Origin: Hyaloraphidium curvatum SAG 235-1
Lineage: Eukaryota; Fungi; Monoblepharomycota
NCBI GenBank assembly: GCA_025558095.1
Contig: JAIVFI010000016.1
Span: 558,001-622,000 of the forward strand
Length of the DNA stretch: 64,000 nt
Direction: 5' to 3'
Below, piece by piece: positions 31,863-45,136 of this stretch (its first letter is position 1; each line of letters starts with the position of its first letter). The notes below the pieces were generated by a model. It did not search any database. It was given only the letters and a program-made list of their open reading frames with translations, and had not been told where the DNA came from. A program made the translations under genes and the position numbers.

Positions 31863-32116
31863 GCGTGTGGCAGGCGGGCGGAGGAGCGAGCGAGGGTGGC
31901 AGCAGTTAGAGAAAAAGGCCGAAAGGAAGCCCAGAGATGTTGATATGTGACAGGAAGGGCGAGCTACTTCATAGATTGTATCGCGCAAAGACTGACAAGT
32001 CAGGACATCGCCGGCTGCACCCCGCGCGGAGCCGACTCGGCGCGCCATACGTCCACTCTCGCCGATATCGTGCTTGGGGAGTAAAGGCCGTCAATGAAAC
32101 CATTCGTCTTTTCCGC

Positions 32117-35100
32117 TCACTCGGTCTTGAGCCACAAACACCACTCATAGAACCGGAATGTCCTCGGAGGATCCGTCATCGCCGGGCGGAATGCGAGCGT
32201 CCAGGTGCCCCCCGGCGCCTTGCCGCGGTAAATGCGGAAAGGCTCCCGCGGCTTGACCGTGTTGGACTCGCAGGTGCCGTTCGCAACGTCGCCGGGGTAG
32301 ACGCTCGTGTCGTCGCGGAAGGTGAAGTAGACCCTGCGCTCGCTAAAGTCGCACGACTGCGCTTGGGAGCTCATCAGGTAGTTTGCTGTGCCGTCGGGGT
32401 GGGCGAGGGATGCGTCCGTGCCGTACTCGTGCCTGTACATGAGGCTGACAGACACGTTCGCAATGGTCCCGCCGGGGGGCACGGTGACGTTGCGCAGGTA
32501 CACGACCTCCGCGCCCGAAGACAGCGTGCCTGGTCCTTCGAAGTAGGTCCGGTCGCAATAGGAGGTCATGCCGGGCGCGACGTCGGGGGTCTCGGTGGTG
32601 ACGGTCCGCTGCGTGCACGAGCGAAGCATCAGAAGTTCCGAACAAGACAGTGGCATGGAAGCACCCACCGATGTCGTCGAAGTGCTCGTGCGACTCGCGG
32701 GCATTCTCGTGCTGGAAGCCGACGTGCTGGTGGAAGCGCCTGGCTGCGCGATCGTCCCACCCTCCTGCGGGACGCAACTTCCATCCAGGAGCTCGAGCGT
32801 CGTCATGGCTAGCGCGTACCCCGCCGTGCGCTCCATCGTGATCGAATCGTCTGGCGAGGTGACGGGCCTGTTGGGCGCCGTGGTTCCTGGCCTGAAGATG
32901 CGAAAGCTGAAGCTCGTGTCGGTTGGAGCAAAGGGCACCATGGCGCCGTTGACGAGGGCGTCGGGCGCCGGGCTGGCGTCCACGTCCGCGCGGCCGGCCA
33001 AGGCGGAGTTGATGGCCTCGATGGCGTCGTACGCCTGGCGCGCGGTCGAGAACGGGAGGGAGACGTTGGCGGCGGAACCAAAGTAGTCGTTGAAGGCAGC
33101 CCGCCCGTCGGCGCCGCCCAAGTTCTGCCGGAAGATGACGTTGTACGACTTGCAGCCGATCACGACGTTGTTCAGGACGGATTTAAACGTCGCAGTCTGG
33201 GATCGGATCCACGCTTTAGTGCTACCCAAACTGTGCGCGCTCCGATCGAAACTCACCCCGGAACTGCACGCCAACCCGCTCGACACAACCGGAGCCGGCG
33301 GCGGGCAGGGTCCCTGGGTTATGGTCGGTCCCAGGGTTATGGAGCGGCTGGTCGTCCTCGTAAAGGACGTCGTGGAAGTGAACGAGGTGCTCGAGGTTAA
33401 GGTGGTCGCCGTCCTCGTCGTCGCCGTGCGGCTGGTGCTTGTCGGCGTGCGCGTGGTGGTGCTGCTGGTTGCGGTGCGGGAGCTGCTCGTGGCCGTGAGG
33501 GTGGAGCTGGTAGCTGTCAATGACCTCGTGGCCGTAATGGTAGAGCTCGTGGCCGGGCGGCTGCTTGTGGTCGCGGTCTGCGTCGAAGAAGCCCGTGGGA
33601 GGGTTGTCGACGAAGCCGGCCGCGGCACTGTTGTGGACGATGCGGCTGGCAGCGCAGTGCTGGTCACCGTTCTGCTAGTGCTGCTCGCCGTCCTGCTCGC
33701 CGTTATGCTGGTGCTGCTCGCTGCTACGGTGCTGCTACTTGCTGTCCGGCTGCCAGTGCGCGCCGGCTGCGTCGACGTCGGGAGCACAGCAGTCGTCGAG
33801 CTCGGCCTCGGGGCCGTCATAGTGCCCGAGGCCGACCTTGTACTGCTCGACGCAGTGGCCGTGCCCGAAGCCGACCTTGTGCTGCTCGACACAGTGGCCG
33901 TCATCGAAGCGGTCGGGGACGCGGTCCGCGTGGCCGTCCGCGTTTCGGTCGGCGAGGCTGTCCGAGTGCCCGTGCGCGTGGCTGATGCGGTCGCCGACGC
34001 CGTCTGGGTTGCCGTTGGCGTCCTGGTCGTCGAGGTCGACGGCGTCCTCCTCCAAGCCTACACCGGTGCACGAAACATGTCAGACATGCATGCCGACATC
34101 ATCGCCATCCGAAGCACCCACCGTGGTCTGCCTCGCCGGTCCAAGCCCCAGATTGACCGCGTAGAACGTCCGCTCCTCGTTCTCCGGCCCCGCGAGCCCG
34201 TAAAGCCTCCCGTCCGCGCCCTGCAGCACCCCGCTCAGCGGCAGCACGATTCCGTCGCGGTCCGCCATGGAATAGTTGGCGAATCCCGCCGCCCACCCCC
34301 CGTCACCGGACGAGGGGAAGCGGAAGATCTCGGCCGCCGTGGTGCCGTACAGGTCGCCGCCGATTTGGATCAGCGGCCCGCGGGGCGTGCAACCCCCGAC
34401 ACCAGATGGCCCGCGGAAGACGAAGAGCTGCTCGGAGCCGACGTAGCGCCGCCATCGGTACGCAGAGCCGCAGTTCTCCGGGCCGCCCTCGGAAAGCAGC
34501 CCTGGGCAGAAGGGAAAGGGTGAGCCATGCGATCGCAAAGGCTCCCCGTTCGGTCACCCACCAAACACGTCCGTCCCCACAGCCAACGGCGGATCCAACG
34601 CCATGCTCCCGAACCCGAACTGCGACTCAGACCAACCCCCGTCAGACCACAGCGCGAGCAAGGTCCCGTTGAGCGCCGTCCTCCCGTACAGCGTGGTCAC
34701 GTACACCGTGTCGTTGCCGCCGATCGACACGCCGCCGACGGGGCGGTAGCCCGTACTCGGCCTCGCGAGCTGGTAGAACACTTCCGGGGCAGGCGATCCG
34801 GGGCGGAGGCGGAATATCGCGCCGTCGTTCACCGACCCGCCCTGGTTCAGCGCACCATAGAGCGTGCCGTCCGAGCCCACTGCGAGCCTGCCCATGGGGT
34901 CTGAGCCGGAGGGCAGGGTGGCGATTGCGCGGACGGTGCCGGCGGCGTCGAGCGCCCAGATCTTGGGCGGAGAAGGCGTGCCTTCCTCGCCGTTGCGCCC
35001 GCTGGTGGTGCCGTAGAAGCAGTTGCACTGGCTCGAGTAGACGGGCACGGTCTCGGGGAAGCACCCCGCCCCGTCGTCCTGGAAAAGGTGTACCACGGAG

Positions 35101-37097
35101 AACGCGCCCGACGGGGTGATCGAGAACAGGGTGCCGCACTCGTTAGCTGTCGTCAGTCCTGTGAAGCCCCGCGCGACGCCGAGGAAGTTGCCGTCGGGCG
35201 CCTCGGCGATGCCGGTGACGGTGCCGAGGTCGGCGCTGATGCGGAACAGCACCGTCGGGCTGGCGGCGGGGAAGGTGGCACGAGTGGCCGTCCGCGAGGC
35301 GCTGCGGGTGGCCGTCCGCGTAGCCGTGCGGGAGGTGCTCGTCGCGGTGCGGGTACTCGTCGTGCTTTGGCGCAGCCCGACGTCGAGGGCAAAGAGCGTC
35401 CCCGTCGCCCCCGTCAGCGAGCCCGAGGTGACCCCGTAGAGCAGCCCGTCGTCACCCAGCACCAGCCCGTCCACGGGCTGCCCGCCAAACAGCTCCGGCT
35501 CGCCGTTGCCCGCGGGATAACCCTCGTACCAGGAAAAGGTGAGCACTATCTCGGCCCCCGTGCTCCCGTCCGCCTTGACGCGCATGATCCTGCCGCTCGA
35601 GTAGCTCGTCGAAGTGCCGCCGTAGTAGAGCCAGCCCCCGGCCTCGACCATCCCAGTCGTCCCGCCGCGGTCGCCCTGCATGTGCGCCAGCACGGCGAGC
35701 TCCCCCGAAGGGCGCAGGATCCACGCGGTGCCCCGGTTGTTTGCCCCGCCCTGGCGGCACGTGCCGACAACCGACCCGTCTGCCAGCCGCAGCACGTAGT
35801 CGTACGCCCTGACCCCCGTGGACGCGTTGAAATGCGCCAGCGTGGACAGCAGCCCGGCGGGCGAGATGCGGAAGACAGTGCCCTCCCCGAACCGCCCACC
35901 CTTCGTCGTCGCGCCGTACATCAGCCCGTCCGCGCCGAGGGTGAGCCCGCTGTAGGGCTCGCTGCCCCTCTCCGCCGCGTTGGGCCCGCCGAAGTGGAAA
36001 AGGATGGTCAGGGTGCCGTCCTGCGCGGCGCGGAACACGGTGCCGCCGTCGTAGAGGCCACTGATCGTTGTGGTCCCGTAAATGTTGCCGTCTGGCCCGC
36101 GGACGACGGATCCCATGGGCGAGGAGCCGGTGCTGACGTTGAAGCCCACGAACCCGGAGATGGATCCCGTCGCGGGGCTGTAGCGCGCCACGGTCCCCAG
36201 GCCCGATGGCCCGCCCGACTGCGTGGGGATGTAGTAGGCGCCATCCGCACCCGGCACGGGCCTCCCCTGCGGGTATCCGCCCGTGTTGCGGTCGATGAAA
36301 TAAGCGACGATCCGCGGGCTGTCCCCGGGGATGTACCGCCACACGGCGCCGCAGTCGCCGCACCCGGGGTTAACGTCGTAGTCGCCGCCGGCGTACGAGA
36401 CGCCGTAAATCGTGCCATTGTCGGCGAGCGCAATGCCCCGCGCCCCGTTCAGGTTGTAGTCCAGCTTGGCCAATAGGGTCGGCGTCGCGCGGAACGTCGG
36501 GGTGGCGGTGGTCGAAGTCCGCGTGATTGTGCGCGACGTGGAGGTGCGGGAACGTGTGGTGGAAGCGGACCGGGTCGTGCCGGTCAGCGAGGTCGACGAG
36601 AGGGTTGACGGCGTGCGGGTCGCCGACGCCGTGGGCGAGGTGGACGTGAGCGACGAAGAGGTGGGGGAGGCGGTCGAAGAGGACGCCGTCCTCGACGCCG
36701 AGCGGGTCGTTGAAGCAGTCAACGAGGTCCGCGACGTGGTCGACGAAGTCCGCAAAAGCGTGATCGAAGAAGAAGTCGGCGTCGAAGACGAGAGCGTCCG
36801 CGAGGCCGAGAGGGAGTTGGTCGCGGAGCGCGACGAGGAAGAGGGCGTCGAAGGCGAAAGTGTCCGCGACGCCGAGCGGGTCGCCGACCGCGTGGCCGAC
36901 GACGACGAGCACCCTCCAAAAACCGTCACCGTGCGCTCCGCGGTCACCGTGACCGTAACCGTGCGGAACTCGGTTGCCGCGCAGGTGCCGGTCGGGCCCG
37001 CCTGCCGCGGCTCGATCGCGGCGCCGCCCGCCCCGCCGCACGCGGCCAGCGCGAGCAGCAGCCAGATCGACAGCATCGCCAGCGCCGTGCGGCCCAT
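32117..37097 (-). CDS. Giant secreted modular protein, copy A: S/T stalks, two GloVer-repeat-like beta-propellers, unknown domain, P-domain-like C-terminus (4 introns)
   Basis: Signal peptide MGRTALAMLSIWLLLALAAC and repeated DG.LYG.T..GG..G.GTVF units. Exons are joined by GT-AG introns near 34502-34560, 34058-34120, 33197-33256 and 32609-32668. Ends GTWTLAFR...FYEWCLWLKTE. Confidence 0.75.
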
Positions 37098-38177
37098 GAC
37101 CCGGGATGGGCGGCGAAAACGGCCCGCCGGGCGGTTCGGGAGGTGCGGCAACCCCGTCAGCGTCAGCCGCCCCAGCCGCCACTCCGCGACCCCGCGCACT
37201 CGGATCGGGCAAAGTTGGTTTCTCACGGTGATGAGCTTACAAGGCGAAAGGTCGTCCGCCTCATTGGTGAGCTGGAGAAGCCGATGCCCAAACGCTCAAA
37301 TGAGCGCGACACCGCTTCCGCCGGCTCCTGGTCCCACAAATCACTTCTACTCTCACTCGCCCATACCAAACCTCCTCGTTGATCACCCTGTCCTACACCA
37401 TCTTAGTCCATCAAATGAACGCGAGAGAAGCTGGATGCCCTCCGGCATAGGAAGCCGAGCCTGCTTGACGCATTCGCGACGGAGCTCACCCCTCTTGACT
37501 TGGACTTTTCTCCGCAATGCGTTTTGCTACTGCCTACTCTAAATGAGGTGGGTGGCGCTTGCGGCGGGATGGCGCGGGTGCGGGCGAGCTCATGGATTGT
37601 TCGGATGGTTTGGCTCATGAAGGCGAACTTCGAGGCGGTTCAGGGGGCCACGAGGCTACAGATTCTAGTGGCGTGGCGAGAGAGGGATCTTACGGGGCGA
37701 AGCCATGGGACTAGAGAGCGCGAAAAGGAACTTCGCCGCGATCACCAAGGTCAACGAAAGGTTTGCCGTCCTTGAACGGCGCTTCACCTAAACTAGGTAC
37801 TGGAGAACGTCGGGAGCTGGCATTGGCCAAAACGGCCGTGTCATAGCCGGTCTTTTATTTGACTTTGGAAGGGCGCGAGGCGTCAGGAAATCGCGCCAAC
37901 GCCGATGTCTCCAGCCCGGGGGGACCCATTGTCAGGGACGCCGGGACCCATCGCGGGGCTGTAGGTGCGCGGAGCCGGCCCACCGCCCCATCCGTCCGCC
38001 CTTGGCTCCATCCAATTTCTCCGCGACAGGAGCACCCCTCCAGGCACGCCCCCTCGGTCCGATCCGAGTGGGCGGCGGGTCGGCGGTGGTGGCGGCTGGG
38101 TTGGCTGACGCCGCTTTGTCGTGCGCCCTTGCGCCGGTCCGACCGCCCTGCGACGTTCCGGGCGCCCATCCCGGCCG

Positions 38178-41100
38178 ATGGGCCGCGCGGCGCTCGCGAT
38201 GCTGCCGATCTGGCTGCTGCTCGCGCTGGCCGCGTGCGGCGGGGCGGCCGGCGCCGCGATCGAGCCGCGGCAGGCGGCGGCGACGACGTGCCCCGCGACC
38301 GCGTTCCGCACGGTCACGGTCACCGTGACGGCGGCGGAGAGGACGGTGACGGTTTTTGGAGGGTGCTCGTCGTCGTCAGCAACCGCGTCGTGGACGTCGT
38401 CGACCCGCTCGGCGTCGCGCACGCCCTCTTCGCGGACACCCTCTTCTACGTCCCTATCCGCGACCACATCTCTCTCGCGGTCGCGGACGGCGTCGTTCTC
38501 CACGACGTTTTCCTCTTCGCTCTCAGCCTTGCGGACGCCGTCGTCGTCGACCCCCTCATCCTCCTCTTTCACCTCTTCATCTCGCAAGTCCACCTCGCCC
38601 ACGGCGTCGGCGACCCGCACTTGGTCAACCCTTTCGTCGACCTCATTGACTGGCAGGCCGACCACCAGCTCGTTCACGGCTTCGCCGAGCCGCACGGCGA
38701 CGAGCTCAACTCGGACGGCTTCATCGACCACCTCACGTTCCCGCACCTCGTCGTCCCGTACAGTTACGCGCACTGCGACCACTGCAACCCCGATGTTCCA
38801 CGCGACGCCGACGCTCCTCGCCAAGCTGGACTACTCGCTCACGGGCGCGCAAGGCATCGCGCTCGCCGACAATGGCACAATCTACGGCGTGTCGTATGCC
38901 GGTGGCGACTACGAACTCGGCCCCGGGTGTGGCGACTGCGGAGTAGTGTGGCGTTACGTCCCGGGTGACACCGCGCGGATAGCCGCATTCTTCAACGACC
39001 GCGACACGGGCGGATACCCGCAGGGGCGGCCCGTGCCTGGCTCGGATGGCGCCTACTACATCCCCACGCAGTCAGGCGGCAGATCGGGTCTGGGGACCGT
39101 GGCGCGCTACAGCCCCGCGACGGGATCCATCTCCGGGTTCGTGAGCTTCAACGTCAGCACCGGCGCCTCACCCATGGGATCCGTCGTCCGCGGGCCGGAC
39201 GGCAACATGTATGGCACCACCTCGTTCGGCGGCCTCTACGACGGCGGCAGCGTGTTCCGCGCCGCGCAGGACGGCACCCTGACTATCCTTTTTCACTTTG
39301 GGGGCCCCAACGTGGCGGAACGGGGCGGCGAGCCCTACGGCGGGCTTACCCTCGGCGCGGACGGGCTGATGTACGGTACGACCTACAAGGGGGGCCGGTT
39401 CGACGGCGGCACCCTGTTCCGCATCTCCCCCGCGGGCCTGCTCTCCACCCTGGCGCACTTCAACGCATCCACGGGGCACAGGCCGGTGAACTACCCGCTC
39501 AGACTGGCCGACGGGTCCGTCGTCGGCACGTGCCGCCAGGGCGGGGCAAACAACCGGGGCACCGCGTGGATCCTGCGCCCGTCGGGGGAGCTCGCCGTGC
39601 TGGCGCACATGCAGGGCGACCGCGGCGGGACGACCGGGATGGTCGAGGCCGGGGGCTGGCTCTACTACGGCGGCACTTCGACGAGCTACTCGAGCGGCAG
39701 GATCATGCGCGTCAAGGCGGACGGGAGCACGGGGGCCGAGATAGTGCTCACGTTTTCCTGGTACGAGGGTTATCCCGCGGGCAACGGCGAGCCGGAGCTG
39801 TTTGGCGGGCAGCCCGTGGACGGGCTGGTGCTGGGTGACGACGGGCTGCTCTACGGGGTCACCTCGGGCTCGCTGACGGGGGCGACGGGGACGCTCTTTG
39901 CCCTCGACGTCGGGCTGCGCCAGAGCACGAGCACCTCCCGCACGTCGGCCACCCGCACGGCGTCGACCAGCGTGGCGCCGACCGCCACAAAGTCAATCAC
40001 CGCGACTCAATCCACCGCATCGAGGACGGCCTCGAGGTCGCAAACCGCAACCGTGCCGACGAGCTCGCGGTCGGCCACGGCCACCCGCCGATCATCCACG
40101 GCCGCGGCGCCGGCGATGCCGTCGACCACCGCGCGCTCCACGACCAGCAGATCCGCCAGCCGCAGCCCGTCGACCACCTCCACCCGATCGTCGAGCACCT
40201 CCCGCACCCGGACCACCACGACGACCCCGCCAATCATCGCCCGCGTGCTGCACCGCTTCGACTGGACCGCTGGCAGCCCCATCGGCATCGCCCAGGCACC
40301 CGACGGGAGCTTCAGGGGGACCAGCTGGGTGGGAGGGCAGGACAGCTGGGGCACCTTCTTTTCGCTGTCTGCGGCGGGAGCGTACAGCACCCTGTTCACG
40401 TTCGACGGGACGACCAGCAACCTCGTCTACGCGTCGGGCCCGCCCTCCTATTCCCCGCAGTGCCAGTGCTTCTACGGCACCACCGAGGGCTCCGAGTTCT
40501 ACATCGGCCCGGACGGCGAGACGAGCTTCTCCGCCGACGGCACTCTGTACTCCGTCGACCTGGCCGGTACCGTATCGGTTCTCGCTCGGTTCTCCCCAAG
40601 GGACGAGCGGCCCAGCGGCGCGCTGGCGATCGGTCCCAACGGCACCGTGTACGGGACACTGTACACCCCCGCGGGGGACGGCGGCCAGGTGGGGAAGGTG
40701 TACAGGTACGACCCTTCCTCCGGCACCGTTTCGACCGTGGTCGACCTCGCCGCGGCCGGGCTGGGCGCGTATCCGGACGGGGTGACCCTGGGCCCGGACG
40801 GCAGGCTGTACGGCGCGGTGGCGATGCTGGACGACTTCGAGGCGGCGGGGTACCTGTACAGCGTGGGCACGGACGGGTCGGGGCTGCTGTCGGGGGCGGT
40901 CGAGCGCAACGTCGGGAAGCCGGTGCTGGGCGCGCATGGGTACGCGTACGGTGGGTGCATCCCGGGCGCAACCTGCCACTGCCGTCGCTGACGCCAGCGC
41001 AGCGATTACGTTGGAGTTCAGAAACTCCTTGTGCTTTGGCAGGATCGTCCGTTGGCAGCCCGGGTCGCCGGTCACGACGCTGTTCACGTTCCCGTCGGAC

Positions 41101-43453
41101 GGCTCCTACGGTTGCAACCCCTCGGCGCCCCTCCTGCGCGTCGGCGACGACTTCTTCGGGACCACGCAGGCCAACATCTTTCGCCTGCGGCCGCCTTACA
41201 CCGAGGTCGAGGTGGTCGTTTGGGCTGGCGGCTCGGCTTTGGAGGCTCCCTTCGGCGGAAGCATGGAGCTCCTGCTGCCCTCCGAGGGCGGCCTCGTGCA
41301 AGCATCCGACGGGCGCATCTTCGGCGTGTCCCGGGCGCCCTGGTGGGCGTCGTCTGAATTCTACGGCGCCTTCTTCGCGATCGACCTCCGCCTGATTCCC
41401 CCCCCCCCACCGACGGCACGCCCGAACTCCGTGGGTGGCCGCGCCGCCTCGTGCGCATTCCGACGCTGATTCGATCCCCACGCAGACGTTCACACAGAGC
41501 ACAAAGACGGCCTCGCGGACACCTTCGCCCCCTGCTTCGGTGACGGCGACTTCGTCCACCAGTTCACGGTCCGTTTCGCGTACTCCGACGACAACGCGGC
41601 CGCGCTCGACGACTGCTGTGCCGCTGACGTCGACGCAACTGGCGGGTACGAGCAGCAGAACGGCGAGCAGCAGCAGCAGGACGGCAAGCAGCGGCACCCG
41701 GACGGCAAGCAGTAGCACCCGGACGGCAAGCAGTAGCACCCGGACGGCAACCAGCAGTACCCAAAAGGGAAGCAGTAGCATCCAGACGGCAAGCAGCAGT
41801 ATCCGGACGGCAAACAGTAGTACCCAAAAGGTAACCAGCAGCAGCAGGACGGCGAGCAGGACGGCCACCACCACTAGCAGAACGGCGACCAGCACTGTGC
41901 TGCCGGCCGCATCGTCCACAACAGTGCGGCGGGCCGCGTCGACAACAGTCGCGGGGCCTTCGTCGACGAACTCCCCGCGGGCTTCGTCGACAAAGACCGC
42001 GCCCACCAGCAGTCGCACAGCAACGAGATCCTCCATCACGGCCACGAGGTCATTGACAGCTTCCAGCTCGACTCTCTCTGCCACAAGCAGCTCCCGCACC
42101 GCAACCAGTAGCACCACCACGCGCACGCCGACGAGCACCAGCCGCACGCCGACGACGAGGACGGCGACCACCTTGACGTCGAGCACCTCGTTCACTTCCA
42201 CGACATCCTTTACGAAGACGACCAGCCGCACCATAACTCTGGGACCGACTATAACCCAGGGACCCTGCCCACCGCCGGCTCCAGTTGTGTCGAGCGGTTT
42301 GGCGTGCAATTCGGGGGTGAGTTTCGAGAGAATCGCGCACCGTTTGCGTGGAACTAAGGCGATCCGATCCCAGACGGCCACATTCAAGTCCGTCCTGAAC
42401 AACGTCGTCATCGGCTGCAAGTCGTACAACGTCATCTTCCGGCAGAACTTGGGCGGCGCCGACGGGCGGGCTGCCTTCAACGACTACTTTGGTTCCTCCG
42501 CCAACGTCTCCCTCCCTTTCTCGACCGCGCGCCAGGCGTACGACGCCATCGAGGCCATCAATTCCGCCTTGGCCGGCCGCGCGGACGTGGACGCTAGCCC
42601 GGCGCCCGACGCCCTCGTCAACGGCGCCATGGTGCCCTTTGCTCCGACCGACACGAGCTTCAGCTTCCGCATCTTCAGGCCCGGGACCACGGCGCCCAAC
42701 AGGCCCGTCACCTCGCCGGACGACTCCATTAAAATGGAGCGGACGACGGGGTACGCGCTAGCCATGACGACGTTCGAGCTCCTGGATGGGAGCTGCGTCC
42801 CGCAGGAGGGTGGGACGATCGCGCAGCCAGGCGGTTCCACCACCACGTCGGCTTCCAGCACGAGAGTGCCCGCGAGTCGCACGAGCACTTCGACGACATC
42901 GGTGGGTGCTTCCATGCCACTGTCTTGTTCGGAACGTCTGACGCTTCGCTCGTGCACGCAGCGGACCATGACCACCCAGACGCCGAACGTCGCACCAGGC
43001 ATGCGCTCGTACTGCGACCGGACCTACTTCGAAGGACCGGGCACGCTGTCCTCGGGCGAGGGGACTCTTTACCTCCGCAATGTCACCGTTCCTCCCGGCG
43101 GGACAGTCGCCAACGTTTCCGTCAGCCTCACGTACTCGCACGAGTACGGCGCGGAAGCGACCCTCTCCCACCCCGATGGCACTGGCAACCGGGTCCTGAC
43201 CCTCCAAGGATTGTCGTGCAATCTCGGCGACCAGGTGACGCAGTTCACCTTCCGGGACGACGCGGCGTCCTATCCAGGCGACATTGAGGGCGGCACCTGC
43301 GAGTCCAAGACGGTCAAGCCCTGGGATCCCTTTAGGGTCTATCGCGGGAAGGGGGCGGCGGGGACCTGGACGCTCGCGTTCCGCCCGTCGAATACCTACC
43401 CGCCTCAGGTGTTCCGGTTCTACGAGTGGTGCCTGTGGCTCTATACCGAATAA
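38178..43453 (+). CDS. Giant secreted modular protein, copy B (inverted paralog of copy A; 4 introns)
   Basis: Same architecture and intron positions as copy A. MGRAALAMLPIWLLLALAAC...FYEWCLWLYTE. Confidence 0.75.
41650..41885 (+). repeat. Coding tandem repeat, degenerate 21-nt unit (RTASSST)
   Basis: CGGACGGCAAGCAGTAGCACC and variants are repeated in tandem in the S/T stalk of copy B. Confidence 0.8.
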
Positions 43454-43572
43454 GGAGGAATAGACAATTCTCGCATACGTTATCACTCGACCACAAGAAG
43501 GGCTGGCCTCCATTGGGTAAGCTTCGCCTTCGCCGTCCATTCAAGCAATCCCTCCCTGCTCGCGGCATGCAG

Positions 43573-45136
43573 CTAGTACGACGGACAGATGCTCTCGATG
43601 GTAAAGAACAGTCCCGCGCTCCGCAGAAGGCTCCACAGGCCGATGGCCACCGTAACCATTGTCACGAAGAACGTCCTGAGCACCTGGAACGTGATGGGGA
43701 ACCCCACAAGGGTCGCCTGGAGCGACCCGACGTCCCTGTAGGCGCGCAGCAGCCTGTCCACGAGGCGGATCCGCTCTGCGCGGCGCGGGTCGGGATCCTG
43801 GCCACCTTCCCGGGCCTCCCATTCGCGCAACCGGACCTGTGCGGATTCGTACAGGTTTCCGACGCTGGAGGCCAGCCGGTTGGCGTAGGCGGAGAGGTAG
43901 GCATCGTAGAGGAAAATGCCGAGGACGGCCGCGACGCCGACGATGGTACCCACGGTGATGCACGATCCGACGGCCTGTGCCGCAAGAGTGAGCTCAGCGG
44001 GCATGCAAGCGGCCACGGATGCCACCTACCGCGACGGTGACGATGCTGAAGAAGTAAACGGCGAGCATGATCCCCCATTCTCGCGTGTGCCGGTCCCCAG
44101 CAGCGAGGCGCACCGTGGCGGCCGCGACCAGCTGGCGCCGGAGCTTGACCAGCAGCCGCACATGCGCCTCGTACTCGTCGTCTTGGGGCAGCGGTTCGCG
44201 GCAGCAATCCAAGACAGAGAAGAGGTTCGCCGCCACCGCGCGGTGGAGGAGGCGGAGGGTGGGTCGCAACCCGGCGGGGCACCGCATCATGTTTGCTAGG
44301 GCCGACAACGGCATCCAGAAAAAGACAATATGCAGCATGAGGATAGTCCAGGGAACCACCCAGGCTCCGGCCAAAGCTTCCGGCGCCACTGTCACAATGG
44401 GAGTCCAAAAGGTGGTAATCCATGCGGCCCACCCCGACATGGCACCGTGGGCCGCGATGGCCAGGGAAAGCTGCAGCGCAATTTCCGACCCGAGATTTCC
44501 CAGGCATTCGGAGCACGGGCACTCGGGGTCGTCGGGCCAGTGCTCGACGAGCACGGACGGCTTTTCCGAGTCCTCCTTATTCTCCGGGTCGCGCGATCCC
44601 AATCCTGCAAGCTGGCTCCACCGCACGAAGCCAGTGAGCTGATCACCACCGAAATTCCATGCGGTGGTGCGGTGGCCGCAGCGCATGAGCGCCCTCAGCG
44701 GTGGGGTGAGGAAGGTCAGGTAGAAGGTCGTTCCGAAGGCGACCACCTGCGGGGTGCGGAAACGCCCGTTTGATGCTGTAGCGGTGAGTGCGAGGAGTGC
44801 GCATCCCGAGCCGACGACGAGGAAGAGCTTTGTGGCGACAACAGCGCGGGGTTCCACTACGGTCCGCATGCCCCTGGAGCGCTGGAGCTGCGAGAGCCTT
44901 CGCAGGGAGGGCCACGGCGACAGGGCGCGCGAAAAAGACTCCCAATTCAGGGCGTGGGAGGTGCGGAAGTCGGCCGCGGGGTCGGAGACGCGGTCGTCGC
45001 CCTCGGGAGGCATGCCGCCCTCGCGGGCCTTGGTCGGCCAGGGAAAGAGTGCGGCCCATTCCGCGGGCTCGAAATCCTTCGGTGCGCGGCCATATATGCG
45101 GGTCGCCATTGGCAGCGCGTCAGAACCCGACGTCAT
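43573..45136 (-). CDS. 7-TM membrane protein, 7TMIC (gustatory-receptor-like/DUF3537-like) family copy 1 (intron 43975-44029)
   Basis: FEPAEW N-terminal motif, HWPDDPECPCSEC, several TM helices, and C-terminal ATLVGFPITFQVLRTFFVTMVTVAIGLWSLL...SICP. The family link is an inference. Confidence 0.7.

Follow-up and report, generated by a model that had tools for sequence, protein, structure and literature searches.

Here we describe a head-to-head pair of very large modular genes, termed L and R, in Hyaloraphidium curvatum, a chytrid and an early-diverging fungus. The genes lie in a window of 64,000 nt (C16:558001-622000 of the H. curvatum assembly, which comprises 31.9 Mb in 55 contigs), and all positions below are those of this window unless another contig is named. 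Repeat finding and blastn delineated a large inverted repeat with arms at 32102-37208 (arm L) and 38059-43468 (arm R). Each arm consists of one gene, the two being transcribed divergently. Identity between the arms is mosaic, a pattern that probably arose by gene conversion between them.

Gene models and expression

The two genes and the spacer between them are as follows.

37097-32117, minus strand: gene L, five exons (37097-34562, 34501-34122, 34057-33257, 33196-32669 and 32608-32117, including the stop codon), 1,578 amino acids (aa)
38178-43453, plus strand: gene R, five exons (38178-40950, 41003-41430, 41486-42316, 42374-42901 and 42962-43453, including the stop codon), 1,683 aa
37209-38058, no strand: spacer between the arms, unique, about 850 nt

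The blastn alignment of the arms stops at L 37208 and R 38059, and arm homology thus extends about 110 nt upstream of both ATG codons. The 850-nt spacer is presumed to be a shared divergent promoter region. A sigma-70 promoter scan of the spacer gave no match, a result of no relevance in a eukaryote.

Two short-read runs were used at the contig level: X1, which provides contigs from spliced RNA, and X2, which provides DNA contigs. Both sets of contigs were placed on the R side only (37700-43650). The four introns of R (40951-41002, 41431-41485, 42317-42373 and 42902-42961) all have GT..AG borders and are skipped by X1 contigs, so R is transcribed and spliced. The last of them is the 60-nt intron that had been proposed downstream of the central domain, and it is a real intron. 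An R-type RNA contig spans 42410-42717 with zero differences. L is also transcribed: an X1 contig placed on R has the letters of L at three positions, namely C at 42834, G at 42843 and A at 42866. Gene L was modelled through GT..AG sites homologous to those of R, which leaves the spliced frame open, and P0056, a partial model on deposit, has the same splice at intron 1. L and R agree in the position and phase of all four introns, indicating that the whole gene was duplicated as one unit.

Deposited models exist for both genes: DFJ74DRAFT_643599 (P0001) corresponds to R and DFJ74DRAFT_671418 to L. The first is out of frame across Ser/Thr linkers 1 and 3 (see below for the modules), and the second is cut to 513 aa, begins inside propeller 1 and runs into intron 2. 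The models presented here correct both. The '98%' identity of the deposited proteins results from the frame errors in the linkers. We considered P0001 and P0056 as representatives of a second assembly or strain and rejected this, both being models of the same genome. A literature search for a paper on the H. curvatum nuclear genome returned mitochondrial papers only. One X2 contig (depth 5.5) is one base short at 38489, within Ser/Thr linker 1 of R; the stretch is of low complexity, and the missing base is likely an error of the contig.

Protein architecture

The order of modules is the same in both proteins: a putative signal peptide, a Ser/Thr linker (linker 1), GloVer propeller 1, linker 2, GloVer propeller 2, a long Ser/Thr linker (linker 3), a domain encoded by exon 4 and a P-like domain encoded by exon 5. 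The N termini of both look, by eye, like signal peptides. The modules are separated by the three long Ser/Thr-rich linkers, in which Ser and Thr make up 50-70% of residues. Linker 2 is 38 aa long in L versus about 107 aa in R. Within linker 3 of R, nine copies of a 21-nt tandem unit (41617-41880) form a Ser/Thr-coding minisatellite, which does not occur in that form in L and explains part of the difference in length between the two genes.

Database searches were run exon by exon, and the spliced proteins were used only for the local codon alignment. The TIGR03803 (GloVer) model matches L at 205.4 bits and R at 214.7 bits, well above the curated NCBIfam cut-off of 44 bits, with seven matched stretches in each exon-1 open reading frame (ORF). 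A Pfam search of the four long ORFs and of single exons gave no match. Outside the H. curvatum genome, in which the GloVer family is small, the nearest relatives of propeller 1 in a search of 5.8 billion proteins are bacterial GloVer proteins, with 30-39% identity. The GloVer propellers (38730-41430 in R and 34122-36446 in L) thus have bacterial relatives only, yet lie in spliced fungal genes, which suggests an old bacterial origin of the module. A literature search for GloVer and TIGR03803 matched surnames only.

The exon-4 domain (R 42374-42901, L 32669-33196) comprises about 140 aa, has no Pfam match and is present in the genome in these two copies only. A single-sequence fold prediction reached a predicted local distance difference test score (pLDDT) of 36, and its language-model neighbours are unnamed bacterial clusters with low recognition. 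Its conservation within the pair is second only to that of the near-identical part of propeller 1, with a non-synonymous divergence (dN) of 0.015. The exon-5 domain is all-beta (model pLDDT 73, predicted template modelling score 0.76). Among structures in the PDB, its model best matches the P-domains of kexin-type proteases (Aeromonas ASP, Kex2 and furin; template modelling (TM) score 0.44-0.51), and birnavirus VP2 jelly rolls score alike. In a language-model search, 30 of 30 matches were PF01483 clusters (score 0.95), whereas the PF01483 Pfam model itself did not match the domain even at E <= 10. The exon-5 domain is thus P-like by predicted fold only.

The closest known proteins are the bacterial choice-of-anchor GloVer surface proteins (TIGR03803), to which L and R are tied by propellers that score above the cut-off and by the identity of their nearest relatives. 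Such bacterial proteins often combine the propeller with P-domain, Ig-like or cadherin-like modules. Unlike them, L and R are encoded in a fungal nuclear genome, contain spliceosomal introns, carry what appear to be eukaryotic-type signal peptides and mucin-like Ser/Thr linkers, and have no bacterial sorting anchor. L and R are most likely secreted, glycosylated (probably O-glycosylated) binding proteins.

Mosaic identity between the arms

Alignment of the arms resolved stretches of near-identity, termed here candidate conversion tracts, and one island without any DNA alignment.

35360-35801, minus strand: candidate conversion tract 1 in L, spanning the last blades of propeller 1, with its 3' edge at the start of Ser/Thr linker 2; synonymous divergence (dS) 0.04, dN 0
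39489-39930, plus strand: candidate conversion tract 1, R copy; sequence present exactly twice in the genome
36094-36200, minus strand: short low-divergence tract within propeller 1 of L; 3 of 107 nt differ from its partner, R 39090-39196; window dS 0.09
32847-33181, minus strand: candidate conversion tract 2 in L, within the exon-4 domain; 10 of 335 nt differ from its partner, R 42389-42723
32603-32776, minus strand: candidate conversion tract 3 in L, made up of intron 4 and the end of exon 4; 5 of 174 nt differ from its partner, R 42794-42967
42389-42967, plus strand: candidate conversion tracts 2 and 3 in R, within the exon-4 domain and intron 4
33872-35359, minus strand: divergent island in L, comprising linker 2, propeller 2, introns 1 and 2 and the beginning of linker 3; does not align with R as DNA
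39931-41533, plus strand: divergent island in R, comprising linker 2, propeller 2, introns 1 and 2 and the beginning of linker 3; does not align with L as DNA

The first-pass annotation of this DNA had put the differences between 35363-35775 and 39515-39927 at about 4-6 in about 400 nt, and our count of 6 mismatches in 413 nt agrees. The core of this block, termed patch 1 (L 35368-35768, R 39522-39922), contains 3 mismatches in 401 nt (99.3% identity) beside flanks at 73-83%, and its edges are sharp, with identity falling to 44/60 immediately upstream and to 20/47 immediately downstream. Measured per 60 nt, identity is 73-92% over most of propeller 1, rises to 59-60/60 across R 39522-39922 and collapses at the start of linker 2. 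The longest exact matches within patch 1 are 170 and 116 nt, and a further exact match of 87 nt links the arms. The central (exon-4) domain and the intron behind it had been called almost identical; this holds for intron 4, which differs at 2 of 60 positions, and is slightly generous for the domain, which is 96% identical in aa and about 95% in nt (28 differences over R 42380-42960). The two remaining observations are borne out: propeller 2, described as barely alignable, has no DNA alignment and an aa identity of 35%, with a Y-S-x-Q-C-x-C-F-Y-G-T-T motif common to both copies, and the terminal P-like domain, described as moderately diverged, is 69% identical in aa.

Synonymous sites and introns follow the mosaic

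Divergence was quantified as pooled Nei-Gojobori dS and in windows. The comparison covers the two arms in a single H. curvatum genome. A uniform synonymous divergence along the arms, which would speak against conversion, is rejected: dS ranges from 0.04 in patch 1 to saturation (about 0.9) in propeller 2. Between these extremes it is 0.40 in the rest of propeller 1, 0.51 in linker 1, 0.28 in the alignable part of linker 3, 0.21 in the exon-4 domain and 0.64 in the P-like domain. Patch 1 has silent differences in 4 of its 120 codons, the remaining part of propeller 1 in 53 of 212 codons (Fisher p = 5e-8). At most 56 codons in a row are silent-identical, a length reached in 1 of 20,000 shuffles of the 5' part plus propeller 1, in 10 of 20,000 for propeller 1 and in 4 of 20,000 for all alignable codons. 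These silent-site run permutations correspond to P of about 5e-5 to 5e-4, and the identity runs exceed a Sawyer/GENECONV-type expectation.

The introns behave like their neighbouring exons. Whereas intron 4 is near-identical, identity drops to about 78% in intron 3 and to about 40% in the unalignable introns 1 and 2. GC content at third codon positions (GC3), examined as a sign of biased conversion, shows no clear difference (0.91-0.93 in the patch versus 0.86-0.90 elsewhere), and because it is similar in all regions, codon bias does not account for the mosaic. An Rfam scan of the region found no family. Outside propeller 2, dN/dS is 0.07-0.4, indicating that both L and R are under constraint and kept functional.

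Within the genome, each module finds its best match in the partner arm. Propeller 1 is 90% identical to the partner arm versus 46% to the next paralogue, the exon-4 domain is 96% identical to its partner with no other genome copy, and the P-like domain is 69% identical to its partner versus 30% to the next match. The L and R copies of propeller 2 are reciprocal best matches at 34-35%, followed by a paralogue on contig C32 at 32-33%. A third, donor copy of patch 1 was not found in the genome. As each module matches the partner arm best and patch 1 is present only twice, exchange took place, by this reasoning, between the two arms.

A second inverted pair in the same family

A second head-to-head pair of genes encoding P-domain and GloVer modules lies at C26:184000-203900, with arms at C26:190201-191519 and C26:197466-198780. 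This pair was initially a candidate for uniform divergence, which a finer identity profile ruled out: a block of about 400 nt near the 5' ends is 90-98% identical inside arms of 64-85% identity. A direct repeat of 455 nt (95.6% identical) lies inside one of the genes. Because the C26 pair is mosaic too, conversion between inverted arms probably recurs in the GloVer family, judged from nucleotide identity.

Probable gene conversion between the inverted arms

Patchy gene conversion between the arms, as proposed in the first-pass annotation, is well supported by these data: synonymous sites and introns are homogenized in discrete tracts, there is no third donor, and the identity runs go beyond the permutation expectation. 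The locus probably originated by an old inverted duplication of a five-exon gene, followed by repeated interlocus gene conversion between the arms. In this sequence of events, the whole intron-bearing gene would have been duplicated long ago in an inverted, head-to-head arrangement; the duplication appears old because neutral sites in the island are saturated while the positions and phases of its introns were kept. Homologous-recombination repair would then have repeatedly copied stretches of about 100-450 nt from arm to arm, and conversion tracts of different ages would have reset divergence wherever they fell, introns included. Propeller 2 and its surroundings, from linker 2 to linker 3, would have escaped. 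Ser/Thr linkers of unequal length may interrupt the homology and so end conversion tracts, and the island, once past the identity needed for recombination, would no longer have been convertible, so that its divergence ran away. We infer this course of events, including the direction and timing of conversion.

Several points weigh against the conversion account. It is drawn from the spatial pattern of divergence in one genome and not from tree incongruence. A run test confined to the tail is weaker, with 219 of 20,000 shuffles reaching the observed length. The role of the linkers as barriers is likewise something we infer. Finally, the divergence of propeller 2 could instead reflect module replacement or diversifying selection, its dN/dS of 0.88 being uninformative since dS is saturated.

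The replacement scenario posits a younger duplicate, with a background dS of about 0.4-0.6, in which the propeller 2 of one gene was swapped for that of a distant family member via the Ser/Thr-coding linkers. The unalignable island does start and stop in low-complexity linkers, and the identity between the two copies of propeller 2 (35%) barely exceeds that to the C32 paralogue (33%). However, they remain reciprocal best matches with a motif in common, both introns within the island have the same position and phase, and the genome holds no closer donor; the swap is quite unlikely. It is highly improbable that no conversion took place at all and that a single duplication diverged uniformly at neutral sites, with strong purifying selection preserving the patches for the sake of the protein or of a nucleic-acid element within them. 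The protein is indeed most conserved in patch 1 and in the exon-4 domain (dN 0 to 0.015). Yet dS is ten-fold lower in the patch than around it (0.04 versus 0.40), the spliced-out intron 4 is 97% identical while other introns are unalignable, the region contains no Rfam family, and the even GC3 speaks against codon bias. Selection on the protein cannot explain the mosaic, because synonymous sites and introns are homogenized as well.

An artefact of assembly or polishing, in which collapse or cross-polishing of two diverged copies created the near-identity, is extremely improbable. One X2 DNA contig (39520-39751) does mix the copies, with an L-type letter at 39581 and R-type letters at 39521 and 39635. 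This low-depth contig is probably a product of bubble popping, which can yield mixed contigs during assembly; alternatively, it may represent a real mixed haplotype, reflecting ongoing conversion or allelic variation. Against an artefact, both copies lie on one contig with unique flanks, and independent RNA contigs reproduce the sparse differences of R in tract 2 as well as the L letters at 42834, 42843 and 42866.

Gene conversion is a well-known and ordinary process, and the pair is a new example of it that involves no new mechanism. There is ample documentation of conversion between adjacent inverted paralogues, in which tracts measure from tens of nt up to about 3 kb and extend into introns (PMC3966223). 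The inverted hsp16 and hsp70 pairs of Caenorhabditis elegans resemble L and R in being close inverted duplicates with discrete tracts of near-identity, hundreds of nt long, that exceed the expectation from their flanks and reach into introns (PMC3966223). Conversion from arm to arm is also described for Y-chromosome palindromes (Rozen et al. 2003, as cited in PMC3194840). Unlike the hsp pairs and the Y palindromes, L and R encode very large modular secreted proteins in a chytrid, with conversion in some modules and one propeller at 35% identity.

Proposed inversion across the patches

The first-pass annotation had gone further and likened the locus to a shufflon that works without a recombinase. 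Bacterial shufflons, such as Rci/sfx of plasmid R64, use a site-specific tyrosine recombinase acting on short specific sites to join one expressed gene to several promoterless cassettes. The likeness lies in the idea of an inversion that re-joins the 5' part of a gene with alternative 3' parts, and the geometry is valid: if the arms crossed over within a patch, the segment between them would be inverted and the head-to-head genes would trade their 3' modules. Unlike a shufflon, the locus holds two complete, expressed five-exon genes with long coding homology, and no tyrosine recombinase was found. A scan of the genome limited to the recombinase families PF00589 (tyrosine recombinase) and PF00239 gave no match to the former and matches to the latter on other contigs only. 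PF00239 (Resolvase, serine recombinase) occurs at nine places in the genome, including C4:373085-373513, C34:542991-543419, C46:168839-169267 and C9:539598-540026; four of the nine have identical scores, which looks like a multi-copy mobile element.

We consider it quite unlikely that crossovers in the patches often invert the inner 3.7-kb or 9-kb segment and that the fungus uses the resulting chimeric genes (the 5' half of L with propeller 2 and the tail of R, and the reverse). The substrate would be adequate, consisting of an inverted 401-nt core with 3 mismatches and the exact matches of 170, 116 and 87 nt, and a crossover would swap the 3' modules without loss of DNA. A second inverted mosaic pair in the same family also fits, and human inverted paralogues provide a precedent: AQP12A/AQP12B and KRTAP5-10/11 undergo recurrent, polymorphic inversions by non-allelic homologous recombination, in which AQP12A and AQP12B exchange first exons and the KRTAP5-10/11 breakpoints fall in the most identical sub-block (PMC3961182). 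Like L and R, these inverted copies contain a sub-block of very high identity as the likely breakpoint, where a crossover can exchange gene parts without a dedicated recombinase. Both orientations have been demonstrated there, whereas L and R are known in one orientation, from the assembly of one strain in which no haplotig is present, and their repeats are much shorter (0.4 kb versus several kb). The X1 and X2 contigs end within about 36 nt of the edge of the patch, so the orientation of the arms is not readable from them. Moreover, L and R are complete, have their own 5' ends and are co-expressed, which allows only two states per patch and leaves no silent cassettes. A flip would exchange 5' parts whose protein sequences already agree at about 86-100%, so that the chimeras would be few and near-equivalent and the functional gain small. 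The resolvase-domain ORFs lie on other contigs, and the lack of a detectable tyrosine recombinase fits the term 'recombinase-free', but nothing marks the locus as a dedicated system.

The proposal of a shufflon-like generator of protein variants is therefore not supported, and inversions, if any, would be rare by-products without a dedicated role. It is very unlikely that the locus, and perhaps also the C26 pair, exists as a mixture of orientation isomers generated by homologous recombination across patches that conversion maintains. If it did, a clonal culture would express chimeric combinations of propeller and tail, conversion would maintain the substrate for recombination, and the locus would act, in a eukaryote and without a recombinase, like an invertible cassette system that serves secreted binding proteins.

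With gene conversion as the probable cause, the L and R pair is a well-delimited case of a large modular secreted protein evolving in concert module by module, here in an early-diverging fungus. The scaffold parts of the protein would be kept alike by conversion, while propeller 2, isolated by the indel-rich linkers, would have drifted to 35% identity.

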